From NCBI GenBank assembly GCA_946965045.2, contig OX337234.1, positions 2,976,001-3,040,000 of the forward strand: 64,000 nt of DNA, read 5' to 3'. The translations under genes and the position numbers were made by a program. This DNA is from Epithemia pelagica (lineage: Eukaryota; Protista; Bacillariophyta). Positions 44,194-64,000 of this stretch are shown one piece after another. The stretch's first letter is position 1, and the number at the start of each line of letters is the position of its first letter. Below the pieces are notes generated by a model. That model did no database searches. It was not told the origin of the DNA and saw only the letters and a list, made by a program, of their open reading frames with translations.

Positions 44194-44456
44194 GATTACG
44201 ATTGGCGTTAAAGACTCGTAATCATAAAGAGTGACTATTAAGATCCTCTATACTAGAGGTCTATGTCTCGCTAAATCTTCGCTCACAAACGCGACCATTT
44301 CTCGGTCCCCTCGCGAATCCATAGTCCGCTTACTAGGGTATTCGTGCTTCATCTCTTATTCTCGTTCAGTTAGCTCCAAAACCTGCTTATAGCTCGTCTT
44401 CAATCGAGTGCAGGACGTACCCTATCCCAGAGAATCCATTCTGGTGGGAAACGCAC

Positions 44457-47400
44457 TTAATAAAGGATCATTGATGCAAGTCTCGTCCGTTCTGTACCTG
44501 TCTGAATCTTGGTCAAAAGGTCAGCAAGGTTAGTCTTAGACGGTTCAAAGGCGATACGGCAACTTCCATTCGCAACATTCTCTCTGACAAAGTGGTAAGC
44601 AATAGCATTCGATTTCTTACGCAACACCGATTCGGGTTTTGAACTGTTGAGGACCACTGACATGTTATCAACACGAATGTGTGCATGTCCTTCAAGTGGT
44701 ACTCCCATCATCCGCAACTTATACCGTAGGCCCTTTATCATCTCGATGCCCACCTTCAATGCCATGAACTCCGAACCAAACGTCGAAGTCTCAACACTGG
44801 TTTGTTTCTTACTATACCAGTTTACTGGAGACCGATTCAAAAAGATGAGAACTCCTGTCCTTGAGCGACGAGTTGCAAGGTCACCGGCATGATCGGCGTC
44901 AACAAACGCGGTCATCTGCACAGAAAGGCCAAGAGGTTCTGGAGCATCCGGTGGTAAATCTTCCTTGGCATCCGGATAGTGTGCACTCCAATCGGCAGTC
45001 TGCTCCTCACCATGAATGATGTAAGAGGGGTCAAGTACTAAGCGAGAACGGTCATGCGTATTGATGTATGCGAAAATATGAAGCATCGCATGGACATGGC
45101 CTTCTCTTGGCCCTGCAAGAAAGGCTGCCAACATTGACACTTCTGCTGTGATGTCTATCCGTCCAAGCTCGACTAGCCATCGAAGCACACCCATTTGCTG
45201 CTGGAAGAAATTCATCCAGTCACCATCACAATACGGACTAGTATCCAGTTCTGGCCTATACCCTGAAGGTAAGACTCCAGCTGTTCTTGTCTTGAATTTC
45301 ATGCCGTGCTTTTCCATCCACATGCTTACATTGCGTATGGCTTCGCTTGCATATCTTTTTGAACTCAAGGCCCAACACCTCTTTGCACTGTCACCATCGA
45401 TGTCGAACGTTTCAACTTGGTTTCCAAGATACAGTTTGGGAGGGCCGATCGAATTTGGTTTCAATAAATAATGTTGATCTAACATTGTCAAGATGTCTCG
45501 TCCCCTGTGTGAGAGCACAAGGACGTCATCGATATAAATGAAAACATACTCGTAGTATTGTGTTCCATCTGGTTTTGTTGCACGGCGTAGGTAGACATCT
45601 GGGTCTGCTCTACACGGAGAAAACCCCAAGGATTCTTGTAGGGTGGTAGAGAGATGCTCACGCCATGCAAAGGCGCTTGTTTTTAATCCGTAGAGTGTCT
45701 TGGTGATGATTGCGTATCGCCCTTCAAATTCTTTGCCGAATTCCAGACCACAGCGGGTGCAAATCTTTTCATGACAGGGCGCGTTTAGGTACGCTCCTGC
45801 AATATCGGCAGCAATGATGTCTATGTCATTGAGGGCAGCCAGAAGGAAGCCGATCCTCACACTCTCTCGACTGACGACGCTCGCGTAGGTCGGGGTTTCT
45901 GGTTCCCCTGTTTTGTGTCCGCCAGCAACATACCGAGCCTTCCGAGTGAAATCCATCTTGACATCGAAAACGATGTGGCAAGGAATAATCTGGTGGCCAA
46001 CCGGCTGTGGTGAGCCTTCATCCAAAATCTTCATGGCCGGAAAAATCTTTGACATTTCAAGTTGGAGGGCCTTAGCCCAGAAGTCGGTGCCAGTTTCCTT
46101 ATCGATTTCAAGTGCACGTTCGACAGTCTTTGGTACCTCAATACCATATTTCTGAAACTTCCGCATGTACCGTGTCGAAGTCGCTGCCTTGATCAATCGG
46201 TCACGTCTCTTTAAGGTGAAATGAACCCACCAATCAAATGCCGGTTCTTTATCTATCTGGTTGGCTATCGCATATTCTGCGACCTCTAAAGGATTTGACT
46301 CCTTGAGATCTTTTAGATGCTCCCAGCTGGAAGAGCCATCTTTCCACTGAACGCACAATGACCATCCACGTGTCGTCCTTTTCTTGTGTTCTCGCCCATT
46401 GAGCATGATCGTCCCGTTGGATGAGGTGATGGCACTCCCATCTTTCTTGTGATCTATGATCTGATCGATAATGCGGTACCGATTTCCTTCATCATTGAGT
46501 TGCTCATAAATATTCTCCGCGATCAAGTTCGCAACATATGATTCCACATGTCCGTCCTGGAATTCTACTTCATACATGGAAGTGTCCAGTATCGGGTTGG
46601 TCGATGTTCTCCCAATGAGCTTCCCATCCGCGTCTCTCTTTCTTCTCACGACTTGTCCAGGGCGTAATGAATCGCCTAATGGCAGCATGACTTTGGCTGA
46701 AATCAGCTTATCGTATGAGTCGGTAGTGTACTCATCCATCTCAGGTTTTGTCACGTCCTCCTGTTCGTCATCTTCATAGGGTTGATAATGTGGGGTTTCG
46801 GTTGCATATTCGTCGTCAACGTCGTCCCCTGGAGCGAGACCCTCCATCCTCTGGCCTAGGACTTGTCTGAGATTGTCGTCGAATTGTTCCTTTTGTGCTT
46901 GGAAACTGGGATCATGAGACTTCTCAACTGACAAGGGCCACACTGATGTTCTGTGGATTACTTTGCCTTTGTCCGTCAAGATTTTGGAACTCATGGCTTG
47001 TCCTACGCTGATACTTGGACCGAGCCAGCGCCCCAATTTTCTTCCTTCAAAGCCTGGGTTCGAATACCAGACCGGGTCATACCACTGGTGCTCTATCAAG
47101 TGGGAGATATCAGGGGTGTCCCCTGTTAGAGTCTTCATTGGAGGCCCGTCCAGATGTGGACTAGAAGATAAGACGGTATGTGAACGTCGTCTTGCCACCA
47201 ATTCCAAACAATGGTCCCATAGGACTGCCGGAGAATTCGCTCGCCTCATCTCTCTTCGGTACATTCTTTTAAGTTCCCGGATGTTGGCCTCAGCTAAATT
47301 TTGGTTGGGCGTCCACGCCTCTATCGGATGGATTTTGCATCCGTATTTGTATGCCGTCTTCCGAAAATTGCCTGTTGTGAGTTCTGGCGCATTGTCTGGG

Positions 47401-49925
47401 ATCACGCAATTAAAGATGCCAAATTCATCAAAGACACGCTCCAATGTCGTATAGGCCTCTTTCTTCTTCTGCATAGCGTAAAATTGGACCCAGCCAAAAT
47501 CTGTGGCATATACTTGGCCACAAGTATTCTGTCCCAAAGACTTGACATCCGAGAAGAGAGTGTCAGTGTAGACATCTGCTCTTAGTCTGCGGTGTTTGAG
47601 TTGGTAAGCGGTGTGTTTGAGCCGCTTGCTCCCGATAGATTCCGAGAAATCTCGAACTCCCAACTGAGTAGTTTGTTGTTACGTTTTCTCGGCCATGGGA
47701 ATCCCAATTCCCCATCGTTTTGAAAGCGTGATGGGATCAACAGTCCCCTTCCGCTTATGCCGCATGTCGGCAATGACTCTTGAGTTGACCCGGACTGTGG
47801 CTGCCATTCTCTTATGCAACTCTCTTGGTCCTTTATTTCTTATCTGGTCGGACTCAACATAGGTTCTGAGTTTCCTTTCATTGACGTCTTCCGTCAAGTC
47901 ATTCGGATTCCACTCAGGATCAGAGTTGGTCATGTCGATCCGGTTTGAGGGATCAATTTCTTTGATCTCGTCCCAACTTGGCTTACGTACCGTGAAGCCA
48001 CTTATTACTCCTGTCAACTGAAAAGGGATCTTCATTTTCCCGTTTCCATCATTCAGTGGTGCGATTAGGGAATGTGACGTTGCTGTCCTGTTTTCTTCCT
48101 TGATGTATTTCAAGGGAACGTCATTTATTTCTATCCCTGCCTCCCGCATTTGATTCGGGTTTAGGAGGCACTTTTGCATCATTGGCAGATGCAAAGCTTG
48201 ATGAAAGTAAAGCAAGTATGTTTCTCCTGATTCCGGGTCATCATATGCCACGACACCGGTCACAATTGGAGTCTCCTTGATACTTCCCAACGTATTTGTG
48301 AAACCACTAACTTCAGCGTTGCCCGTTTCATGGAGTACAAGGCAAATGCTTCCGAGACAGCAGGTATCTGCGTGACTGTCAAGCTCGCATTGAGCTGTAG
48401 TGGCTACAATGTCGCTCGAGACTCCTTGGATGGAGTGTCAGATTCGTTCTTTGCCTCTATTCTTGCGTTGACTGATGATTGCTCCAATTCCGGCATCTTT
48501 CGCTTCATTCTGGTCATCTTCGCTAGATGAGTGACTTTCATCAGTCGTCGAGGTCGACGAACCATCGTTATTCTTCTTCTTCTTGCTTCCTGACGAGACT
48601 GCTGATGCAGTACGCTTCTTTGTGCTGCTATTCTTGGCATCACGAGTTTCCCGGACAAGCTGTTGCTGCTCCTTGGACAGTTTAATCCATTCTTTATAAG
48701 GGAAGTACCGATTCGGGTTGAAGGATTTGTTACCATTCTTTCCATTCCCATTCCCGTTGTTCTTATTTCCTTTATTGTTCACGTGCACGGCTGAGATACG
48801 TGCTTTCCTGGTAGTGGCGCTATAAGAGACCTTGTTGTCAAGGACCTCGGCCATATAATTTGATGCCAATTCAAAAGATGTACGTAGATTTGGCGTTGCC
48901 AGAATTTGATTCTTGGCACTCTCCAAACGAGGGTCGTGAATTCCTGTAAGGAGCACTCGAATCTTCCTCTCAGTACTGACCAATTCTCCAGTTGATTCTA
49001 AATCAGTGAAGGCTCGATGAAGCTGTTCGGTGTACCTTTCGTAGGTAAAGTTACGTCTGGTTCCGTCGTAATAGCTTGTTTCTAGGGTCTGGTCCGCTTT
49101 AGCACGCAACCTTGTTTGGTATGCGTCACCCAAATAGTGGCCTTTCAATGCTAAATATGCAGCACGCCCACTTCTTGCTCGACTGTAGGATTGCACCCAT
49201 CCCCATCCAGGTCCTCCATGTGTAATATGGCGGACAACATCCCATACGGCTTCATTATCTGTGAGGGCTGTCGGCCCGGTATGGGGAGCTCGACGGATTA
49301 ATTCATGGAGGTGAGAAGGCGTCGCATAACCTGGGTCAAGGTCGTCAGGTGGGGGAATGGTTTGAATCATTCTGGTTTAAGCGGCAAGAGGAATGCCTGT
49401 CACGCCTCTCTTCCGTTCCAAGTAGTCATCTAGATTTTCAAGGACACTTCGAATGTTCTCGACAGCTGTGAGGCGCTCAGGAAGTTCAATGTCGTTGTCA
49501 TATTCCTCCTCACTTTCTTTGAATCGATAGAGGGCTTGGAGATTCTCCAGACTAGCAGAGTTGGCTGCTGGGTCAAAGGTACGTGAGATCTTGGTGAGAT
49601 GCTGGATGTAATATCGCAGCATTTTGAGACGCTTCTCAATGACATGTCCAACGAGAACTCCAGGGTTTTGCATCGTCGTTGGGATGCCTGCAACTGGGTT
49701 AGCCGCATCGTAAGCAGGGTTTGGGATCGTACCCCCTGGCTTACGGGCATTGGTACAAATTTCGGCGATATCATTTTCCGACAAGCCTTGGAAATCGCTG
49801 ATGGAAGTAAGTCCTTGTCCATTCAAGGCATCTCGGACGCTCTGGTTGTTGATAAGGAGAGTGTTCTGCAAGTAACCGTTGAGGATTTCAAGCGGAGTTG
49901 GAGGAGCTGGAGGTGCGGCGTCCAT
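44457..49925 (-). pseudogene. Copia Gag-Pol polyprotein in one frame with three in-frame stops (49377-9, 48438-40, 47679-81)
   Basis: Protease ELDSHADTC; integrase TDT/PDNAPE/AEANIRELK; RT YVAGGH, IAGAYLNA, LYGLKTS, YIDD; RNase H VDADHAGD, DNMS, NLADLLTK. Confidence 0.95.
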
Positions 49926-51076
49926 GGTTAGCTTTCAATTTGCAATACTTGTTGGTATTCTTTCAGACTTTCACGTATTCGGAAGAGTGAATGATCCTCA
50001 TCTTTTGGGATTGTCATGTGAGCGATTGAAAGGTAGAAAGCATGCACAGCTGCATTATCGTCCCGCGTCACATAAGTGATATTTGTTATCGCTGGGTCGC
50101 ATGGCAGGCTTCTCTTTTCAACGGCAAAGATTGGCGCGTCCGCCATTGCCCAGGAGTGTGCGCATCGCAGACCACACTCCTTCACTAGTCCGGTCTGGCT
50201 CCGTTGCAAGTCAGATATTCTACAAGACTAGTGGAACAACCTCAAGGTTGACCATATGGGCGGATCATAGGGACATACTTAGTCCGATCCAGATATTTTC
50301 ACTACCTTCCCAGGCCATTGTGCAAGCTTAGCTTTCTCATCCTTTCGTCATGGCTCAGAGTCTTGGGTCTGATAAACCAAAGATCGGTCATGTTAAAGAC
50401 TCGTAATCATAAAGAGTGACTATTAAGATCCTCTATACTAGAGGTCTATGTTCGACTGAGTTCAGAATGAACGTGTCGGGTAAGCCGGCAGGCTAAGGGG
50501 GTCTGGGGGTGGGAAAACAACAAAGACTAGAAAGAATTTTTTTAGCTCAAGAGTCGAAATTCAGTACTTTTCACCAAAAGCTTCCCACGTTAGGCAGAAA
50601 ACGCCGGGCCAACCCCTATTCAAAACCATTCAGCCCCGAAGAAAAACAATGATCGAAGAACGGTCATCCATTGTTTTATCACTCCATCAAATAAAAACCA
50701 TTTCACCACGCTGTTCCACGTCAGAATCTCGTCTGTTTTATCAATCCATTAATAAACTCATTTTTTCACCACGCTGTTCCACGTCAGAATCACGCCCAAC
50801 GAACCAACCCACGAAACATCTCCCCACGCCATAAGGAGTTTAGCAACTTTGTCACTAACACCAGAAGCTGAAGATTCAGACTTGTAGAAATGCATCCGAA
50901 GGCAACACAAATTGGAGTAAGATCCCCCCAGACATAGGCATTCCTAGTAAGAATCAGGCGTGCCGACGAAAAATCGTACAGTATTACCATACTAAAGTTT
51001 TTTTAGAATATAGGCGGGATTACGTTTCTACAACCGATCGTACCCATTCACTCTCTCCGTTCCCCGTACTTTCCGA

Positions 51077-51865
51077 TTAGACGAGATCCACACGCGGAAA
51101 ATAGTTCAAGTACTGATGTTCCTGTACAACGGCATCCATCAATCTCACGTTAAATTCAAGCTCTAATGTCACGATAGCATTGTCGTCGAAAATCGTTTCC
51201 ACCACAGTCGCATTAATGCCCAATTGGTCGCTCGTCCCCGATTTTTTGAGAATCATGAAACCAGGGTCAACCCCCGGTAGGTAGGTCTTGTACAACTCAG
51301 CCATCACATCACGAATCTCCCAGAAACGATTAACATGAACAATCAACTCACCCATCAAATTGTTGGTCTTGACCCGGCAAGGGAGCCAGTCGTGAGAAGG
51401 ACTAGCAAACGTGACAGGGCGTTGAATACCAGACGGAAAGCGATTACGAAATCCTCCCTCAATCGTCGACAACTTGTCAATCGGAAAGGGCCTGGACGTA
51501 GTAGGCGGACGAAAATAGATCTTGTAGCTACCCTTCAATACCAAATCTTGCTCAACCTTAGGCAATCCCCAGCTGTGTCCCCCACTCGAATCCACTGACC
51601 ACCGAACTCGCATGATTCGTCCGTCATGACCAAGAGATTCACCACCATCGATCACCTGGTTAGTCTGATCATCTGCCAAGCCAATCAAAGTTTCCGGAAC
51701 CTCCAACGCTTCGGAAACGCGAAGCCGAATGACGTCGAGTGGAGTGTCTTGCATGCACATTGCACCGAATCCCCACGTCGGCGAAACTTTGACAATAAAC
51801 TGCGCCATCTCGTCGTCGGCCCCAACAACGAAGTGCCGCGACGGCAAAACAACCAACTGAACCAT
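51077..51865 (-). CDS. Helitron cargo A: two predicted ubiquitin-like domains
   Basis: Intact ORF, ATG 51865. FIVKV...DTPLDVIRLRVSEALEVPETLIGL and CRVKT...EIRDVMAELYK..GVDPGFMIL follow the beta-beta-alpha-beta pattern of ubiquitin. Paralog of 62559-63326; no C-terminal GG. Confidence 0.6.
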   Translation of the reverse strand: MVQLVVLPSRHFVVGADDEMAQFIVKVSPTWGFGAMCMQDTPLDVIRLRVSEALEVPETLIGLADDQTNQVIDGGESLGHDGRIMRVRWSVDSSGGHSWGLPKVEQDLVLKGSYKIYFRPPTTSRPFPIDKLSTIEGGFRNRFPSGIQRPVTFASPSHDWLPCRVKTNNLMGELIVHVNRFWEIRDVMAELYKTYLPGVDPGFMILKKSGTSDQLGINATVVETIFDDNAIVTLELEFNVRLMDAVVQEHQYLNYFPRVDLV

Positions 51866-52123
51866 AGTCTTGACAACTGAGGTAAGTGCACAAATGCAGA
51901 CTGTGGTGGACACGAAAATTTATGAGACATCTTCGTTTCTAACCTTTTCCTCTATTCTGTTACCAGAAAAACCCACCCGCAAACTTATTCGACACCAACC
52001 GTAACCACACCTCCACGGAGGTCGTGCCGCGGAAACTCGTCACGGTGGACAGAAACCGACCGACACGACAATCAACCGAAAACCCACCCAACAATCAAAC
52101 ACATTTCGACGACGGACCGTGCC

Positions 52124-52825
52124 ATGGATCACCAGCTACTGTTAGTTGGTCCATTGTTTTGCTACATGTATCCTCGTCGTGCCATCTACCGTAACCGTGC
52201 CGGCTTTTTGCGTCATCCAGGCATGCCTGGTTATCGTGCACGCACAACGATCGACGGCGGCTGTTCTTTCCAACCCGTGGATTGTTACGTGCGTGTGAGT
52301 GATACGGTCGACTTCCGTACCTGCGTAGTCAAAAAGTACTCCACGGCAATTCACGTTTTACGCACCATTGCAAAAAAGATGCGGATTCCTCTATGTGACA
52401 TTCGCCTAACCAAGCAAAACGGAAAACGGATTGCTATGAAGGCATATGTGTTCGAAAGCGACAGCGATCTATCTAACGGTGCTATTACACTGGCTATGGT
52501 GATGGGAAGTCATCGTGATTTCAGCGAGACTTACCTTCCCGAGAATTTTTCGCTTTCGTCAACACCAGAATGCAAACAGGAAAACGACAATGAGCAAGAC
52601 GACGAGGATGAGGAAGACGATTCCGAAGAAGAGCTAGACGGGCAAGACCATGAGGATGATGATTCAGAAGAAGAGAAACAAGACGGGCAAGACCATGAGA
52701 ACGATGATTCAGAAGAAGATGATGATTCCGTTGTGTTGGTTGACAAGATCGAACAAGCGGAGAGCATTGGAGGCAAGCGAGACTCGTGCCGATTGTCGCG
52801 TTTGGTAGAAGAGGCGTATGTCTGA
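52124..52825 (+). CDS. Helitron cargo B: predicted SUMO/ubiquitin-like domain plus acidic repeat tail
   Basis: CYVRV...CVVKKYSTAIHVLRTIAKKMRIPLCDIRLTKQNGKRI resembles SUMO/Ubl. DGQDHE(D/N)DDSEE occurs twice. Confidence 0.5.
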   Translation: MDHQLLLVGPLFCYMYPRRAIYRNRAGFLRHPGMPGYRARTTIDGGCSFQPVDCYVRVSDTVDFRTCVVKKYSTAIHVLRTIAKKMRIPLCDIRLTKQNGKRIAMKAYVFESDSDLSNGAITLAMVMGSHRDFSETYLPENFSLSSTPECKQENDNEQDDEDEEDDSEEELDGQDHEDDDSEEEKQDGQDHENDDSEEDDDSVVLVDKIEQAESIGGKRDSCRLSRLVEEAYV

Positions 52826-53467
52826 TTGTTGCGGCTCGTCTCCAGTTGCGGCGGATCAAGAAACCAAACACCATTGTTTTTTGAGGTGAAAAATTGAGTA
52901 CCTTTCCGCCGTTTGTTGTCTTTGACACCACCACGTCTCAATTTAGACGATAGTAGTTTCTCTTGCATCACATCTTCTTGTTCATTTCCATAGGGATCTT
53001 CTTGTTGGGATCCTCTTGTTCATTTCCATAGGGAGTGAGAGCCAAATGGACAACGGCAGCCTTGAGAGCCTCCATTAGGCCGTATCGCCATTGTTCCCCG
53101 ATCTTTTTGGACAATCCTTTGCCAATTAGGCATCTTTGGTCCTTGGCATGTCGTCGATGATGGATGGTCAACAAATAACGCTAAACGCACGTCTCGTATT
53201 CTTCCATGTCCACGTAGGTGTCTCTCTGTCTCTCGCTTTGTCAATTTCAATGGTGCCAACCAAAGATCCGTCATCGCTCCCATGTGCAGAGCGAGAGGAA
53301 AAAGAAAGTAGGAGAATCACTGCGAATCGCAATGAAGGACAACCACTTGTATCTGTATGCAACCCTATAAGCACGAAACACTTGCGGCGCCGGCCTTAAG
53401 ACTTAAAGATTAGATTACTACAACAACTAATCAAAGGCCAATCTCTCCGTGCTCTCCATACAAGACC

Positions 53468-54348
53468 TCAGCCTTGAGTCATGCCGGGATATCCGAACTT
53501 GAAGCGCGCGACATTCGAATAACGACCGTTACGGTCGACGCTGAAAACCGAGTCATGTTCCACGTGTTCACCACCTTCACCACCGTCAAAAAACTGGGAA
53601 TAAAAATTCGTCGTGGGACTCCCTTCTTCGGCCAAGTAGCTATCGATTATTTCCGCCACGTGCTCATCGGTAAATAGATGATCAAGCGCGCGAGGCGGGC
53701 TCTGAGTGTGGTCGAACTCCGCCTTGTAAATATAATCCTTTTCCCAAGTAACATTGGCGTTCTCATTGTCCGCGCGCTCAAGAATCTCGATTAGCTTCTC
53801 CGCGAATTCTTTCTTGAGCTGCGCGTGCGCAGTGCTATCAACCAACGGATTGTGCTCGGTAGGCGGGCACGCGACAACACATGGCCAGAAAAAAACACCT
53901 TGGTTCGGCTTGGGGGGGCCCTTCACCAACGGAAGGTTCTTCTCGCGCGACACACGACGGTGTAGGGTCGTGATGCGCATGTCATACGATTCGAGCTCGC
54001 CTTGCGCACTATTGAGAATTTCGTCAGTGACTGGCTTCAGATATCCCGATTCTTCAACACCCGCCTTCTGAAGCTTAAGATACCCAACAATAAACGCTCC
54101 CTTCGGACCACACTGTTCGAGGTGAACCTGTGTCACCTGTGGCCCAGCCGCAGATGCACGGACGTCCTTCACTTTCTTCTTCCCTTTCGAAGCAAATGGA
54201 TTCCTCTTGAGCTTAACGGGAGTAACCACTTTGTGTGCACCCTGATACACATCGGGTGTTTCTGTTGCGTTGGTCTGCAAAAATGGGGAAGGTAAGTAGG
54301 CGCCGGGCCAAGCACCATGGTTATTGCACGACGAACGGAACTCACCAT
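53468..54348 (-). CDS. Helitron cargo C: unknown ~270-aa protein with an ATG-only first exon
   Basis: ATG (54348-54346) is followed directly by GTGAGT. The intron 54345-54275 ends in a pyrimidine tract + CAG and joins in frame to the open ORF (TNATETP...). Confidence 0.6.
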
Positions 54349-54532
54349 GCTGTCTTACTCAACTTTCTCCAGATAAGACACAAATTGTTCTCAGCCGGAT
54401 TTATGAGATCAACAGGAAATGAATGCTGTTAAGGTTGATTGTCGTGCCATCTCCATCAGTCCATTAACGTCGAATCCAGGTCGAGTCGTACCGTGGACTG
54501 CAACGGTCCATTTATGTCATCATCAGGACACA

Positions 54533-54829
54533 CAACAATTTACACACATACCCAACAATCAACCACGAATGCAGCAGCGTGAATCACCGGACGAAGTGCC
54601 AATGCAATCGGAGACACCACAAACAGCACACAGATTCAACAATCAACCACGACCGCAAGAGGACCGTGGAACACAACCGACAACAATTTACACACATACC
54701 CAACAATCAACCACGAATGCAGCAGCGTGAACCACCCGACAAAGTGCCAATGCAATCGGAGACACCACAAACACCAACAGATTCAACAATCAACCACGAC
54801 CGCAAGAGGACCGTGGAACACAAGAGCGA
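54533..54829. repeat. Two-copy 148-bp tandem repeat inside the Helitron
   Basis: CAACAATTTACACACATACCCAACAATCAACCACG... starts at 54533 and 54681. Confidence 0.9.
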
Positions 54830-56114
54830 AAAACACCACGCCGTACCGGGGGAGATGCCAATGCTGACGGAGACACAACAACGCGATGCACAGCAATCAA
54901 ACTACCTAGTCCGTTCCCATCAGCCCACGGCGTGCAGTCTATTTCCACGATCTTTCAAGCACCACACATATTCAACAATCAAACACGACCGCAGCGTGAA
55001 ACACAACACTAGTACAGTCTGTGGTACTAATCTAGCGTGGTGATTAACGTAGTAGTCCGGCGTGTTAGTTGTGTGCCGTCCACGTTTTTCTAGTACATTA
55101 CGGATTGGAACTGATCAGCATCCACTCCATCCATCTTGTTTCATTATTTCTTGCTTTCATTATTTTGTTTTCCGGTGCTGGTTCACAGTTCACAGCTCAC
55201 TGCATAATTTGTCGGTTGGTTGTTGGTACTTGGTACGAAGTTTATCACACGTATTGTTGTGTAACCGCGTGTTCTTGTGGCGGCTGAGTAACCACGTGTA
55301 ACCACGTGTGTTTGTGTGAAACGATCTGAGGAAGGAAGTGTGTCGCTTGATTCCGTGTGTGAGTTCTGTGTCTTTGCTAACAAAATCCGGGGAACCATCG
55401 GTGGTAACCAATCCAACCGGCAACTGGATTTCCAATCCCTAGAGATTGTTGTACACCCCCATCCCGTACCTTGAGTACAAGTAGACCGAAAGGTTGAAAA
55501 GAGGGCGATCCTTGCCAGACCGGCTGGATACCGTCAGGGGGGCGGAGTTTAAAGTACTCGACAGGTACAACTCCGCGTGCTACGGCACATCATTGCGCAC
55601 TAACGAAACATCTGTCGCGGCTGTGCTCGCCACATAGTCGGTACTCTTTTCTGCATCACGGACAGGGCGACTGATTCCGCGGGACCGAAACTGAATCTTG
55701 GTTGTCTTACGACATCGTCTGTCGTCGGCCGTGTGAAGTGGGCGACTGATTCGCGATCTGAACGGAAATCTGAGTCTTGGTTGACCTACGACGCCGTCTG
55801 TCGTCGGCCGTGTGGAGTACGGGCAAGGGACTGGCGATCCCACAGTGATTGAACAAGACTCAAGTATCAAGACTACATGGACAGGCTCAGTGCGTGGATC
55901 CCTAACAGGTGAAGCTGCCAGTCACGTGACATTATTGTCTGTGATATACTGACAACCTGGATTACTACAGTGTGAGGGGCCCGCTTTTCGTAATAAGTCG
56001 GGTACTACGGCAACGCGGCTGTTGGAAAAGAGGCTTCCTCAATAATTGTTTCTGACAACAAAGGAATTCCTGCCACAGCTTTCGTGCTTACAGCGACTTA
56101 CACTGAGTAACATA

Positions 56115-56553
<439 letters not shown>

Positions 56554-56560
56554 CAGTGAC

Positions 56561-59500
56561 ATGCATTTTGTTTGTTTGATTTTTAGCGTCATTTTAGTCA
56601 TGAATGCAAATGTTAGGGCAAGATCTCAGGGCATTAGAAATGCAGAATCCTCGCGCAATGGGTTGTTGTACACAGACGCACAGGGCAACTCCAACGCAAA
56701 AATATGCTGTGTTTGTGACACATTGATTCCATACGGTGATGAAAAATGCTTGACCATACAGGACATCCGTCACAAACATTTGTGTTCTGTGTTGTCGAAG
56801 AAGAACTTGGGTTTGTTGGAGTATGGGATTAAACAGGAAGGGTAGGTTGCTATCCAGAAGCACTATACACAGGACTGTTATACGACTAGACGAAAGGAGT
56901 TTAAGTTTCTGAACAATTTGGTTTTGTCCCCCAAATCATACCCCGCCAAAAAGGGCACAAAAGAAGGCCTTGGATGCTATAGGGCTTGTCACTCGCACCT
57001 TCAGAACATGAAAAACAAGAAAGGTGACTGCACCCCACCACGCTATGCCATTGTTAACGGCCTATCGATTGGAAAGCCTCCTGTGTGTTTGACAGACCTT
57101 AATGAGGTTGAATTGGCTATGATAGCGCCCGCTAGGACAAACAAACACATTTTTTCATTTACCGCTGGTAGCCATAAATCAATCAGGGGATGGCATTCGC
57201 TGTACTATAATGACCTTGATGCTGTCAATGGCGTTGTTAATTGGTGTAATGAGGCAACCACACAACGACACCAGCAAGGAGAAAGCAATGATAGCATAAG
57301 TGGGGAAGAAAACGCAGAAAAGAAGTTATACATTCCTACAATCGCGGTGGTATTGTGCGGCCCGTTTACGTCGGCCCAGCGTGCAAAAGTGAGGGAGAAA
57401 ACCGAAGTGAGATGGGAAAAAAATGCAAAATGCACTGGTATGGTTAAAAGCAAATAACCCACTATATGCAGAATATGATCTCCCAACAGACGCAATGCTG
57501 AAACCAATTTTCCTTGACAAAGCAGAGATTGTTCCTGAATCGTCGTCAAATGTCGAGCTGGTTTTTGAAATCAATGCGGTTTTCCCGGACTCTGATGAAC
57601 CCAAAACAGGTAATGGTGGGTTCGCGACTCAGCAGGAGTTCAGAAATGCTTCTGTAGAAAATTTAGTAACACCAGAGTCTGACAAGCAAGCAACATTGAT
57701 ATCCCGGCCAACCCCACATCTACTCCGTGATTATGAGGGTGACAACTTGATTCGTGCGTTCCCCCTTCAGTTTCCCTACGGAATTGGCGGTCGTAATTCG
57801 GAGGGTGAATTGCGGCAGGGGTTGGGTATCTGAAACATTTGTCTATGTTAGCCCCATCACGTTTTCATGGGGCAGCCTTTATATGTGTCCTTCATAATAT
57901 GTTTGAGAGACAAAGAATGGTTGCCAATACTTTCCTTAGGGTGTCTGATTCACAAGCACAGTCGTTTCCAGATATTTCGACAGAGGCAATTGAGGAGGCC
58001 TTGCGGATGATGCAGGACAACGTGTCATGTTCCACCCCGGGATACATGTTTCTTCAAAAGCTGAGAGCGATTACTTCTTCCATGGGCCATACGTTGGGTG
58101 CGGCAAAAAGGGCCCGACAGAGAATGTTTTCGATGATTTCGCATCATGGTTTGCCGTCTTTGTTGTTTACAATTACACCAGAGGATGCAATTAACTACAG
58201 AATCAGGGTAATGTCGACGGGCGGGACGGGCGAGCGTCCACCACCTGATCCATTCACTTGTGATTTCAGTGAACTTGCAAAATATGCTAAGGAATGTAAG
58301 GAAATCAGGGTTGATAATCCAGGGCTGTGTGCATTTGATTTTGAGAATGTACTCCGGATTACAATCGCACATTTGATAGGGTGAGACGAAACTGAACAGA
58401 AAAACAAACCCAGCTTTGGAATATTTGGAGACATAAGTGGGTGGTGTTACGCAGTTGAGGAACAGGGACGAAAAACCCTACATGCACATTTTCTGCTGTG
58501 GGTGAAAGATTGGGCAAAATTGCTAAATGGGCTATCAGATGAAAGCCTCAGGGACACGTTCAAGAAGCAAATGGAGAAATATGTGTCAGCCGTGTCAAGT
58601 GCGGAATTGCATGGTAACGATTGTCAACCGGTGTGCACAAATGATGGCTGCTCTGGGTCTGTCTTGGAGCACTGCAGTGCGCAGGACTTGCGAAATCTCC
58701 GTACACGGGCAGGAAAGACGGCTTTGGGTGGGAAACAAATTATGAAGTGTGAAACCTGTGAAAAAGGCTACTCAAGTGAGGATCTGGTAAAAATCCTAAT
58801 TGACCCAATGTTTTCTCTGCAGGGGGGGGACAATGAACCGTTTTGGCCACATGTTTCTTCACAACACACAAAATATCAGCTTCTTATGGAGTTTGCATTG
58901 ATGCGGCATAATCATCCGTTTGTTCCGAAGATCCTCGACGATAAACAAGCTGCAAGGTTTGTCGCAGCTTTGAGGAACCTACATAATTCGAATCACTGTA
59001 CAGCATGTCTCAAAAAAGGGGGAGAATGCCGGATGAAGATTCCCAACCTTCCCTTTGAAAGAACCACTTTGGTTTTTGATGAGCATTACACTAATTGGTA
59101 CGACTGGAAAGGGAACAACCGTGCACGACAGCTTTTCCATGTAGGTCATAAGCGTTCCACAGCAGATGTTATGATGAATATCCATAATCGTGCTGCAAGT
59201 AATCTGTTTGCTTGTAACACCAATGTGGTTGCGGGTGTCGATGGTGGTAGTGTCATGTATATGACATGCTATGTGTCGAAGAATACGCAGAATGAGGACA
59301 ATGAGCATTTTGCTTCTGCCGCGAAGCATATGGTTCGTAAAATGAAGACGTATTTAAGCAACGATTTAGAGGACAATGAGAATCGGGAGAACAACACTGC
59401 CGATACTGATAATGACAAAGTCCTGCACGGTATGCGTGGGCTAATTGGTGCTGTTTTGCTTTCTACGGGGGCACACGTATGCAGTGCACCAATGTCAGCG

Positions 59501-62260
59501 TTTTTGTTGAGGAATGAGTCTCGTTTTGGGTTTTCGCATGAATTTGCATATGTTGATCTCAGGGATTTTGAGTCAGACAAACTTGAGAAGTTTTCGTGTG
59601 ATGCCTATGACGGCGAGGTTTTCCTGAAATCGTCTGTGGCTGATTACTTATATAGGCCACATGATTTAGAGGGTGTGTGTCTTTATGACTTCCTCTGCAG
59701 TTATTCTGTTGGGCGTGCGACCTCTAAAAACCGTGGAATGGAGTGGGTAGCAGAGCATCCGTCGCGGGGTAATTTGGTGTTGAAAAAAAATAAGAAAGAC
59801 AAAATTCCACTTATTTCCTTTCTGGATTTTGTTGATACAAAATTTTTTGGGGACAGGTCAATTGAAAATGTTAATGCATCGGGAGATGTTGTTCTTGATT
59901 CTGGTTTGGCAGCCATGGAATCTTATGCAAAGAAGGCCTGCCTTCTTTTTTACCCCTTTCGGCAGACAGGAGATCTTAGATCAGGGAATGGGAGATATCT
60001 GGGGAAATTCCAGCAGGGTTTGGCTGGTGGTATCATTTTGGAACAGCATTTGACGGTTCTTTCAAACATACAAGACTGTCGTAATAGTCTTAATTGCGGG
60101 AGACCGAGCGATTCTCTAGAAAGAGTGACAGAGCAACCATCGCTTGTTGTTGGTGATGCAGGTGATTCTGAGGAAGAGTGCGAAACAGGAATCGACCCTG
60201 GCATGGATGCAGTTTTTGATGAATTGATTTCGTGCCTGGATGTGAGTCGGCCGTTGTTAAGAAACGCTGATGGATTGTTGGCAGTTGAAAGCAGGTTTAT
60301 TCGGTCATGTGGGACAAACAAATGTGGTGAAAACTTGGTGGTCTGTCCGGAGTTGCCTGACTCGTCGCCATCAGTGTTTCGTGTCAGTTCAGATGAGCAC
60401 GCAGACAGTACTACCTTTGTACAGCATGCAAGTGTGGATGAGGAGGTATTTGAATCAAGAAGAATCACTTATAGAAGTTTGCATGAACTGTCTGTCCGTT
60501 TTCGTGAGCGTGTGATGGGTGTAGATGCTAACAGTCACCTGCAGGCAACTGGGACATTGGAGAATATTCGGGCGTATGCGGATGTGTGTTTTGGAACTGA
60601 TGTGGATCAAAAAAGAACTTTTGAGTCAATAGTAGCTGCGTTTGTGCTGGAATTATACAAGGAGGCAAATAGAACACAAGCAGCAGTCGACTCCGAAGAT
60701 GAACTGGAGGCAAACCACCAGAATACGAGGTTTCTTAGTTTACGCAAAAAAGAATTAGAAAAAGTGAATAGAGGTCATCAATACATCGCGTTCCTTTCGG
60801 GTGCAGGTGGTACGGGGAAAAGCCATGTTTTAAAATCGGTTGTCCGATATGCAAAGAGCATGTGCCGCAATTTGAGTGTTAAGTACGACAAGCGGACTAT
60901 TGTTGTGACCGCGCTTACTGGTGCGGCTGCTGTTGGTATAAATGGTGAAACAACCCATAATGCCTGTGCTATAAATCGAGAGGTTGATGGAGAGGTCGAG
61001 GAGTGGACAAATGCGTATATGTTGGTTGTGGATGAAATTTCGTTTGCATCCAAAGATGTGCTTATAAGTCTGCATCATAAACTGCGTGAGATCAAAGAAA
61101 ATGCAACTGCCCGGTATGGAGGAATTCCTGTGTTATTTGCTGGGGATTTTACGCAGTTGAAACCCGTGAAAGGATACCCCTTGTTTGTGTATAAGGATCT
61201 TGAACATTGGTATGATTGGGTGCATACGTTTATGGAGCTTCGAACTAATCATAGATTCGTCGACGATCCAGATTACGGTGAACTGCTTTTAAGGTATAGA
61301 GATATTGGGCCTGATGCAATAGATCTAGATACATTGAATACACGTGTTGTTGGTAGTCCTGGGGGGCCACGTGAGAGCGACATACCGTCTACGGCAGATT
61401 ATGCCACAAAGTCCAACATTGATCGTGCGGCTATTAACGATGCCATCTTTTGCAAACATTTGGCAGAAACACATTCAAAGGATCCGGAAAGGGACCCCCC
61501 TTTGCATACGATTTGCGTTCGTGCGTCTGACTTGCGTTGGAAGAAGCCGAAGACGAGAAGGGACTTTGTGGACTTTAATTCGGCCAGTAAAGACATGTTA
61601 TATGCGTATTGTGGTGAAGGACATGTTAAGAGTAAAGATAATAAGCATTACGACCCATTGTTGAAATTTTACTATGGTCGTCCATTGATGATTAATGACA
61701 ATATCGATGTTGAGAGGTGTGTTGCTAATGGGGCAATGTGCACTTTCCGTGAAGTTGTGTTGATGCCGGGAGTTACAGTTGGTGATATGGAGAAGATATG
61801 TATTGATGGCTACTTTGTTTGGTGTGTTAGTGTGTCACAAGTTCGGGGTTTGAAAGTGACAATGCAAGATGGTGTTGAAGGTTTCGTAGTGAATTTGGAG
61901 GCTACAAAAGTTACAGCCACTGTTCAGTTTCTTCTGCCGGAATTTGGTAGGAATGTGAGGATTAAGAAGACTATGAGGCTGAAGCAGTTTCCAATTAATG
62001 TATCAAATGCACGAACAGGACATAAATTGCAGGGAAGGTCGTTGCGTCATTTGGTGATTAGTTCATGGGACTATACGGATAATTGGGTGTATGTGTGTTT
62101 GTCTCGTTGTGCCACTTTGAATGGTTTGTTTTTGCGGCAGCCGTTAAATTTGGACAAAACAAGAGGCATTTCGGAAGAGTGTGCGAGATTCTATGAGTTG
62201 TTCAGGGAAACTAAACAGCTACCAGAAAAGGTTGTTCTGTTTGAGGAGGAGAGGGGATAG
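56561..62260 (+). pseudogene. Helitron Rep-helicase (HUH endonuclease + Pif1 SF1B helicase), disrupted
   Basis: N-terminal PPRYAIVNG...P..LTDLNEVELAMIA, FPLQFPYG, Rep motif 1 PSLLFTITP, HUH VEEQGRKTLHAHFLLW and Y-x3-Y YMTCYVSK. Helicase GAGGTGKS, VVDEIS, AGDFTQLKPV, HKLQGRSL, YVCLSR. Stops at 56843-5 and 58382-4; frameshifts in an A7 run (~57422) and a G4 run (~57812). Confidence 0.92.
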
Positions 62261-62289
62261 TACCGCTTTCGATGTTTTTGGATTGACAC

Positions 62290-62472
62290 CAGTCCATTTC
62301 CGTCAAAAATTTGATTCGTGAGGTCCAGTTCTATCATCCGTCGGCCTTGCGTCGTTCCTTGTCCGTTCCAATCGATTGTTTGTGTACAAATCAAACATGC
62401 ATTGATGGTTTTGGATTGACAGTCCATTGCCGTCAGAAATTTGAGTCGTGAGGTCCGGTTCTATCATCCGTC
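62290..62472. repeat. ~53-bp imperfect direct repeat (period ~130) between RepHel and cargo D
   Basis: CAGTCCATT.CCGTCA.AAATTTGA.TCGTGAGGTCC.GTTCTATCATCCGTC occurs twice. Confidence 0.85.
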
Positions 62473-62501
62473 ATCAGACAGCCAAATCGGGCTTTCATTT
62501 G

Positions 62502-62511
62502 TCTCATAAAT
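62502..62511 (+). promoter_or_regulatory. TCTCATAAAT motif ~48 bp upstream of cargo D ATG (also upstream of cargo A at 51918-51927 and cargo C at 54399-54408, minus strand)
   Basis: Same decamer, same orientation relative to the gene, ~48-53 bp before three ATGs. Confidence 0.55.
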
Positions 62512-62558
62512 TCTGTGAGATAGATTTCTGTTGGGTTGTTGGTTAAATAGTCAAGATC

Positions 62559-63326
62559 ATGTGCCGTTATATTGAATTGTCCTTGGATAGTTGTGATTTT
62601 GGGACAAGCGATAAGTCAGTGGAGTTTCAGGTTCAGGTTGGTCTGTCAGCTCGCTGGCGGTTCAAGGGAGTGTGTCCACGGGACACACGGATGGCTGTGC
62701 ATCGCCAGAAGGTTGCTGATGCATTGGAAGTTGAGGCTTGTTTGATTGGGTTAGTCTGTTTCACGACGAATCGGGCGGTCAGTGGTCGTGAATGTGTCGG
62801 TGACCAGTGCTGTGTGGGAGTTCGGTGGGCTGTGAATCCAAATGAGAGGAATGAAACCTGGGGGTTCGAACGTGCAACACCAGATGACTTCGTGCTGCGT
62901 GATACGTACAATAGATATTTTTGTTGTGAGGCCAACGAGTATGTTGATCTGTTGAATGAGTGGGAGCGTGGGTATGATTGTTCCTTTCCGTCTGGTCGCG
63001 AATGGCCGGTCACGTTCCAAGAAAATGTGGTTAATTGGCTGTCTTGTCGTGTGGCTACGAATGCATTGTTAGGGGAGTTCACCGTCATTATTAACTGTTA
63101 TTGGAAGGTTCGCCATGTTAAGGCGGAGTTGTATAAGTTTATGGGGGTCGATCCAACTTTTATGATTCTTAAAAAGTCAGGAGAGAGTGCGGAATTGGAT
63201 GACGATGCAGCGGTGATCCAGGAAATTTATGGGGAGAATTGTACGGCGGTTTTGCAGTTGTCCTTGGATGTTGAAATGATGGTCAAGTTGGTGGCAGGGC
63301 ATCCATTGTTGTGTTTCTTTCGTTAA
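62559..63326 (+). CDS. Helitron cargo D: two predicted ubiquitin-like domains, paralog of cargo A
   Basis: KVADALEV...VRWAV vs RVSEALEV...VRWSV; WLSCRVATNALLGEF...KAELYKFMGVDPTFMILKKSG vs WLPCRVKTNNLMGEL...MAELYK...GVDPGFMILKKSG. Confidence 0.65.
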   Translation: MCRYIELSLDSCDFGTSDKSVEFQVQVGLSARWRFKGVCPRDTRMAVHRQKVADALEVEACLIGLVCFTTNRAVSGRECVGDQCCVGVRWAVNPNERNETWGFERATPDDFVLRDTYNRYFCCEANEYVDLLNEWERGYDCSFPSGREWPVTFQENVVNWLSCRVATNALLGEFTVIINCYWKVRHVKAELYKFMGVDPTFMILKKSGESAELDDDAAVIQEIYGENCTAVLQLSLDVEMMVKLVAGHPLLCFFR

Positions 63327-64000
63327 ATCGATTTAGTCATGTGAGCGGGTAGACAGGGGTCTTGAGTGTTGCTGTATGGTTTGGATGGCATAATGAAACT
63401 CTAGAAATTAAATTTATTCTCCTAGTCATGTTTGTTATGGAACTTTAGTGTCCCATCTCATAGTGGGTGGATCTCAGGTTGTTTTGATCTACACTTTCCT
63501 CTTCCTGTTTTGACGTGGACCGACGTGGTGAGGTGGTTGTGATTTATTGCGGACGCTAGCCCCAGCCGTCATGGGGGGTATGGGTGGGTCAGGTTGGCGT
63601 GGTAGGTTATGAGCCCTTTTATGTTTGGGTGGTCGTTGAACTCAGACGTTCCATCCCGAAGGGTACTGTCTCGCTAAATCTTCGCTCACAAACGCGACCA
63701 TTTCTCGATTTGGCCTCACAACTCACAAGCAAGGCATACGAGCAGGTATCCAGTAAGTACGAGTATTTAGCAGAGACGGTAGTTCGTAATTGGTGGTTGT
63801 AGTTCGTGGCTGCAGGGTTCGGGTGGGAGAAAGCAGTGGCATCTGGCAAATGTGAAATGACAGAGCAGTCGACTAACCTGCAATTAATAAAAGGAATGAC
63901 CACTCCTTTGCGACTGTGTATTCTTTCCTTGGAGTGGTGGGGCAAACGGAGTGGACAAGGACAGACTAAACCGTAGTGGAGTTTTCATATATTAAACTAC

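Follow-up and report, generated by a model that had tools for sequence, protein, structure and literature searches.

Helitrons are already known to carry accessory enzymes of the ubiquitin system; do they also carry genes for proteins that fold like ubiquitin itself, and does the element lineage keep such genes? This question is raised by a 64,000-nucleotide stretch of the diatom Epithemia pelagica (assembly GCA_946965045.2, contig OX337234.1, positions 2,976,001 to 3,040,000 of the forward strand; hereafter the window, whose numbering is used throughout), in which a 13,218 bp Helitron2-type (HLE2) element occupies positions 50452–63669 on the plus strand. The element contains a RepHel transposase pseudogene and four accessory open reading frames (ORFs), termed A to D, which an earlier reading of the DNA sequence alone (the original prediction) had described as a suite of ubiquitin-like (Ubl) genes. 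What is new at this locus is that Helitron accessory genes encode ubiquitin-like folds.

Predicted folds of the accessory proteins

Gene B (52166–52825, plus strand; 219 amino acids from an ATG at 52166) encodes a conserved RxGFxxHPG(M/N)P motif followed by a SUMO-like beta-grasp domain and an acidic tail of 93 residues, 43% of which are Asp or Glu. The domain and its tail had been anticipated, and structural modelling agrees. An AlphaFold2 model generated with the B alignment places a beta-beta-alpha-beta...beta order at residues 48–135 of the ORF as listed, with a predicted local distance difference test score (pLDDT) of ~86. Foldseek comparison with the PDB gave SUMO1, ISG15 and ubiquitin as best matches (probability 1.00, target template modelling (TM) score ~0.8, root-mean-square deviation 2.1–2.4 Å), and the best ESM Atlas match was a plant SUMO. 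Within the acidic tail, the sequence DDDSVVLVD (within 52730–52760) resembles a SUMO-interacting motif (SIM); it is kept among the copies of the window subfamily and is absent from B of two other subfamilies described below.

Genes A (51077–51865, minus strand; 262 amino acids) and D (62559–63326, plus strand; 255 amino acids) lie near opposite ends of the element, point outward and are paralogous, all as originally described; their products are 38% identical (E 1e-55). The N-terminal domain of A (residues ~18–96) was modelled at pLDDT ~70 and reached Z 9.0–9.8 against SUMO/Smt3, while its top 50 fold matches were mostly SUMO, ubiquitin, UBX and RA-type beta-grasp domains. On these models, both B and the A N-terminal domain have a predicted beta-grasp fold, and homology to A predicts the same fold for the N-terminal domain of D.

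Two Ubl domains had been assigned to each of A and D. The fold search upheld the N-terminal one in A. The second is not established, although we consider a C-terminal Ubl domain in A/D probable on the strength of three signs. The secondary-structure order of the A C-terminal half suits a Ubl, its language-model neighbours are Rad60-SLD and ubiquitin clusters (0.89–0.90), and the D C-terminal half reaches Pfam Ubiquitin_2 at E 0.045 (14.7 bits, below the cut-off of 23.1). A Pfam scan with the whole A to D products returned no family match at E ≤0.1. Comparisons by hhalign among the A N-terminal, A C-terminal and B domains, whose profiles are shallow, were non-significant, which leaves it unproven that the Ubl domains share an ancestor.

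The four products end in VDLV, EAYV, MTQG and CFFR, and none therefore terminates in Gly-Gly, in agreement with the original prediction. An internal SSGG after the first A domain is private to the window copy, the other copies reading SSEG. Judged from their sequences, the Ubl proteins A, B and D are non-conjugatable.

Retention of the accessory genes among element copies

A whole-genome search recovered eight copies of the element, the window copy and seven more, at 95–98% identity (2–5% diverged). The element in the window is a slightly decayed member of a young, recently active HLE2 family. Compared with the seven sister copies, its RepHel frame carries four private lesions, exactly the two stops and two 1-nucleotide frameshifts that had been predicted. 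Among the sisters, the RepHel frame of copy C10 is open for 1,983 codons (1,901 counted from its first ATG) and those of C8 and C16 for 1,893 codons. All five genes are intact in none of the eight copies; C8 combines A, B and C with an open RepHel.

Variants among the copies were used to estimate dN/dS (omega), with Nei–Gojobori site counts that carry no correction for transition bias, which weakens the values that follow: 0.24 for A (p 7e-5), 0.32 for C (p 6e-4), 0.36 for D (p 9e-3), 0.40 for the B domain (not significant) and 0.31 for RepHel itself (p 6e-10). Because the accessory genes have omegas near that of RepHel, they appear to be constrained about as strongly as the transposase. These sequence comparisons indicate that the accessory genes are under purifying selection and are kept by the element lineage rather than being recent passengers.

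The passenger explanation would have A, B and D as captured host or foreign genes, useless to the element and intact only since the family is young. Its best arguments are that the copies have diverged so little, that five of the eight copies have lost D in whole or in part, that A is frameshifted in C10, a copy with an intact RepHel, and that A and D are limited to one subfamily, one degraded A-like fragment aside. The freedom of the window's accessory genes from lesions does not count against it either: at the RepHel lesion rate, ~2 lesions would be expected in 3.1 kb of accessory genes and the probability of seeing none is ~0.1, which is statistically unsurprising for a single copy. What makes the explanation improbable is that the accessory omegas are as low as that of RepHel, that B persists across subfamilies whose synonymous sites are saturated, that A and D have retained ~38–40% identity at a dN/dS of ~0.3, that A, C and D have a putative promoter motif of their own in common, and that the rest of the genome contains no donor gene.

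The contrast between a broken RepHel and intact cargo in the window copy, with a probability of ~0.1, is non-significant for a single copy, and it was rejected as a stand-alone argument.

Genes B and C accompany RepHel in other subfamilies, and C-like genes do so in other organisms

In the Epithemia genome, B and C adjoin RepHel at at least 10 further loci belonging to two other subfamilies, whose RepHel is 43–63% identical. Gene order and orientation are rearranged between the three subfamilies, and the genes have diverged to the point of saturation at synonymous sites (proportion of synonymous differences, pS, 0.65–0.83; of nonsynonymous differences, pN, 0.24–0.48). The label of cargo used in the original prediction is correct in that the element carries these genes; it understates the association, since B and C are conserved beside RepHel in three subfamilies. 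A whole-genome search found no host homologues of A to D outside a Helitron context, small fragments aside. In place of missing beta-grasp folds, neutral dN/dS or ordinary host homologues, the three outcomes on which the original prediction had staked itself, we thus found the folds, omegas of 0.24–0.40 and no host counterparts.

A and D are restricted to the window subfamily, save for the degraded A-like fragment mentioned above. This fragment (C16:2149884–2150283) has 54–62% identity over short stretches and lies ~8 kb from a degraded C-like fragment. This arrangement hints at an older, fourth subfamily that likewise had an A/D-type gene.

When A, C and a B profile served as queries in word-seeded searches of a 5.8 billion protein collection, every match came from assemblies of this organism or of one very close to it. 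An exhaustive profile search with the C alignment recovered 47 relatives at E ≤1e-3, which have several conserved motifs in common. Nine distinct contigs with C-like genes were examined, of which seven, in five independent groups, reach a neighbouring gene. In all five of these informative groups, which come from other samples, the C-like gene is divergent from RepHel and lies 0.5–1.2 kb upstream of it. The RepHel neighbours are genes or fragments with DUF6570 and/or Helitron_like_N, and two of the RepHel ORFs are full-length (1,879 and 1,953 amino acids). A TARA ocean metagenome is the source of one of the C-like contigs. No B-like ORF was detectable beside the C-like genes on the contigs from other samples, short as these are. 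On one metagenome contig (L067, 4532–12368), three large ORFs of 285, 633 and 1,502 amino acids without a Pfam match lie past the C-like gene of a related Helitron; these are possibly more accessory genes of that Helitron.

The original prediction had offered no assignment for gene C. That remains apt in so far as C together with 32 relatives revealed no common Pfam family, nothing RPA- or OB-like and no PDB sequence match, yet it misses what its distribution reveals: on sequence comparison, the C family is a lineage-wide companion of this HLE2 clade and its most widely conserved partner. The same distribution bears on the notion that the accessory genes benefit the host, or act as toxin- or addiction-like modules that have no part in transposition, with the element as a mere vehicle. 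Nothing specific speaks for it. With all homologues residing within Helitrons beside RepHel, and with C linked to RepHel in other organisms too, we regard this notion as highly improbable.

Possible roles of the accessory proteins

Taken as a whole, the explanation that we prefer, and to which we would give even chances, is an HLE2 family with accessory genes kept by its lineage, in which C would serve as a cofactor and the Ubl proteins as adaptors or decoys. According to this model, the family would move by means of RepHel (HUH nuclease plus Pif1 helicase), which still-open sister copies would supply in trans. The four accessory genes would be transcribed separately and kept under selection by the element lineage. 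C, with its basic N-terminus and conserved core, would probably be a transposition cofactor. A, B and D would act as adaptors or decoys for host readers of SUMO and ubiquitin, such as Ubc9, SIM-containing repressors or repair factors, SUMO-targeted ubiquitin ligases (STUbLs) and the proteasome. Their effect would be either to shield the transposase along with its DNA intermediate or to weaken silencing that depends on SUMO.

The individual role assigned here to A, B and D, that of adaptors or decoys on host SUMO/ubiquitin machinery, is our leading guess, held with less than even chances; it draws on their structural neighbours, on analogy with the RENi proteins and on the acquisition of OTU, UCH, VTD and Ulp1 domains by other Helitrons. 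A bolder version would have a Helitron2 lineage in marine algae encode SUMO mimics (A and D in tandem, B with a SIM-bearing tail) that titrate host factors responsible for silencing or restriction, with C as an obligatory second transposition protein that was overlooked because it lacks a Pfam model and has a spliced start codon. We consider this version rather unlikely.

Several points weigh against the preferred model. The C-terminal half of A was modelled at a pLDDT of only 20–38. Pfam ubiquitin and Rad60-SLD hidden Markov models gave nothing above the gathering score for A to D or for single domains, and when the alignments of B, C and the A/D C-terminal half were searched as profiles against PDB sequences, all matches were at chance level. 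Because the beta-grasp fold has many unrelated roles, it does not by itself establish a connection with the SUMO/ubiquitin pathway. Relatives outside the assemblies of this genome come from the exhaustive search with C as query, A and B having been searched by the word-seeded method, and the three public runs that contain the sequence are all genomic DNA, with contigs of up to ~500 kb. Finally, the deletions of D and the frameshift of A in C10 indicate that A and D are dispensable in cis.

The charges and the co-retention of B and C raise a different possibility, namely that the Ubl proteins work within the transposition machinery itself, as assembly modules for a RepHel–C–DNA complex, apart from host SUMO/ubiquitin signalling. 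Here the acidic tail of B would mimic DNA, or would chaperone the basic N-terminus of C or the DNA-binding surfaces of RepHel. The B domain is basic (isoelectric point, pI, 9.8), its tail acidic (pI 4.05) and the C N-terminus again basic (pI 10.3), which would suit such contacts, and B and C have stayed together in three subfamilies despite rearrangement. The absence of significant sequence similarity between A to D and SUMO or ubiquitin, and the functional promiscuity of the beta-grasp fold, are likewise in keeping with a role of this kind. It is made doubtful by the C-like genes that lie beside RepHel on short contigs from other samples with no detectable B-like ORF, and by the nearest structural neighbours, which are consistently SUMO/ubiquitin modifiers and not other beta-grasp classes; we hold it possible, with less than even chances, and about as probable as the adaptor or decoy role. 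Co-folding of B with C gave a score of 0.00 in a prediction that did not use the alignments, and this value was counted neither for nor against binding.

The C family, being tied to one Helitron2 clade in several independent metagenomes from the ocean and elsewhere, is a candidate new core component and would be useful as an annotation marker for these Helitron2 elements. The element occurs in diatom-like algae, a group in which transposon control is poorly understood, and the youth of the family, together with at least one fully open RepHel, makes mobilisation experiments realistic.

Comparison with known Helitron cargo and Ubl proteins

The HELIANO survey lists 20 domains that are stably carried by Helitron-like elements, among them no Ubl and nothing similar to C (PMC11417382); unlike the listed elements, the present one thus carries a set of Ubl and C-family genes that lies outside those 20 domains. 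Literature searches for Helitrons with ubiquitin-like or SUMO genes found no such report, and the remark in the original prediction that a multi-Ubl Helitron cargo was not previously known therefore stands.

The nearest precedents are enzymes. Helitrons stably carry OTU, UCH, VTD and Ulp1 domains (PMC11417382), and the VTDs of Helentrons are active deubiquitinases with a suggested role in protecting proteins needed for transposition (PMC9741609). Like the OTU, VTD/Herpes_teg_N, UCH and Peptidase_C48 proteins of Helentrons and Helitrons, the present proteins are Helitron-encoded, structurally of the ubiquitin/SUMO type and recurrent in clades. Whereas those deubiquitinases and SUMO proteases are enzymes and are often fused to RepHel, the proteins described here are products of separate genes, with modifier-like folds, no catalytic domain and no Gly-Gly. 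Modifier-shaped proteins that are non-conjugatable would offer a second handle, complementary to the enzymes that remove ubiquitin or SUMO, on how Helitrons deal with the ubiquitin/SUMO machinery of their hosts.

Through their SUMO-like domains, which function in replication-coupled repair, the RENi proteins (Rad60/Esc2/NIP45) bind Ubc9 and STUbLs. A and D resemble the RENi proteins in plausibly having two tandem SUMO-like domains, in lacking Gly-Gly and in having language-model neighbours with Rad60-SLD. They differ in that they have no significant Rad60-SLD match and are encoded by a transposon, and in that, of their two domains, the first has a structural model and the second is putative.

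The Ubl header of Crinkler (CRN) proteins carries an LxLFLAK-type motif and is followed by a C-terminal effector domain. As in these headers, a Ubl fold is predicted here at the N-terminus of stramenopile proteins, and in Phytophthora, Helitrons and CRN genes are found clustered together (PMC5289972). In contrast to CRN proteins, A and D have two Ubl domains (the second probable), B has one Ubl domain and an acidic tail, and no effector or toxin domain is present. Kinship with Crinkler headers, which the original prediction had raised, was abandoned: there is no Pfam or sequence match and the architecture differs.

Gene C finds its closest parallel in the RPA-like, single-strand-binding accessory genes of HLE2, which are separate genes upstream of RepHel and conserved within clades (PMC11417382). 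C is likewise a separate, clade-conserved gene upstream of RepHel; unlike the RPA-like genes, its family has no RPA or OB-fold sequence match.

Element ends and class

The limits of the element had been placed with the help of a split long terminal repeat (LTR), and this placement was borne out. A 98 bp direct repeat at 44207–44304 has a second copy that the element splits into 50392–50451 and 63670–63707. The insertion host is a Copia-like retrotransposon on the minus strand (44207–50451), with RVT_2 in a pol ORF of 1,068 amino acids. At 98 bp its LTRs are unusually short, and since the pair is 100% identical, the retrotransposon and the Helitron insertion are both young. Reading the empty site from the intact LTR revealed no target-site duplication. 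The 5' end is readable in seven of the eight copies, all of which begin with TCGACTGAG immediately 3' of a T, while copy C3 can be aligned only from ~230 bp inside the element. All eight copies terminate in GGGTACTGT followed by C or T; among the seven with a readable 5' junction, this 3' flanking base is C in five and T in two. The split LTR and the ends common to the copies together define the element as 50452–63669, with a TCGAC start and a TACTGT end.

The left end carries a 12-nucleotide terminal inverted repeat (50453–50464, plus strand), 11 of 12 positions of which are complementary to a subterminal repeat of the same length at the right (63637–63648, plus strand). Two left subterminal repeats (50689–50726 and 50766–50789, together spanning 50689–50789, plus strand) are inverted relative to a right subterminal repeat (63508–63545, plus strand); these repeats are imperfect, with a local alignment score of 36 against a shuffle maximum of 28. 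Between the right inverted repeat and the CTGT end lies a short palindrome, CCCGAAGGG (63655–63663, plus strand), whose hairpin is weak: its stem consists of 3 GC base pairs only, and the 3' end (z −1.7) does not fold clearly better than shuffles.

An AP endonuclease domain is a feature of Helentrons that Helitron2 lacks. The RepHel pseudogene (56561–62260, plus strand) was scanned with Pfam as ORF pieces, which matched DUF6570 (8.4e-9), Helitron_like_N (1.6e-7) and the PIF1 helicase (4.6e-18), with no match to Exo_endo_phos or an AP endonuclease domain in any piece. DUF6570 is a published marker that separates HLE2 from HLE1 (PMC11417382). DUF6570 and the terminal structure therefore assign the element to the Helitron2 type, the class originally proposed. 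Its single large RepHel, a left terminal repeat matched by a subterminal right repeat, the lack of a target-site duplication, the T 5' of every readable insertion and the accessory genes upstream of RepHel are all as in HLE2/Helitron2. It departs from the usual T-T insertion of this class in having C as the 3' base in most of the copies that could be read, and from the class in general in its very weak 3' hairpin.

Gene models and start signals

All four accessory ORFs are open in the window copy, as had been stated, with corrected starts for A and B and a spliced ATG for C. The start of A, an ATG at 51865, was set by a putative promoter motif, and just 5' of the B ATG the window copy has a private 1-nucleotide indel. 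Gene C is encoded on the minus strand by a long exon 2 (53468–54274; 268 codons plus stop) that has no in-frame ATG. Exon 1 consists of the ATG only (54348–54346, minus strand) and is joined in frame to 54274 by removal of a 71-nucleotide GT..AG intron (54275–54345, minus strand). This one-codon exon and the intron immediately after it are kept in all eight copies. In copy C3 an in-frame TAG falls within the intron while the AG acceptor is retained and exon 2 is open, and in subfamilies 2 and 3, too, an intron interrupts the gene at roughly this position, a few codons past the ATG; both observations support the intron.

The decamer TCTCATAAAT occurs 50 nucleotides upstream of the A ATG (51918–51927, minus strand), 50 nucleotides upstream of the C ATG (54399–54408, minus strand) and 47 nucleotides upstream of the D ATG (62502–62511, plus strand). 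It is a putative core-promoter or start-site element common to A, C and D.

Tandem duplications are present in the gap between C and RepHel (~147 bp, 54532–54823) and in that between RepHel and D (~130 bp, 62290–62472). The plus-strand ORFs at 54419–55043 are translations of the former repeat and are probably not genes.

Lesions and start of RepHel

The private lesions of the window RepHel, all on the plus strand and absent from the sister copies, are two stops, TAG at 56843–56845 and TGA at 58382–58384, and two frameshifts, one from an additional A at 57417 and one from the loss of a G after 57817. Both stops are C-to-T or G-to-A transitions, the sisters reading CAG and TGG, a pattern consistent with methylated cytosines having been deaminated while the copy was silenced. 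In copies C8, C11, C13 and C16 the frame is shut five codons past the ATG of the C10 type and then open for 1,446–1,893 codons. RepHel may in truth begin at a later ATG, or its start may be spliced like that of gene C. A microsatellite of (GAGAAA)n-like units followed by (AAC)n (56049–56560, plus strand) abuts the RepHel ATG; its length varies between copies, and in C10 it is in frame with RepHel as polyQ/polyN.

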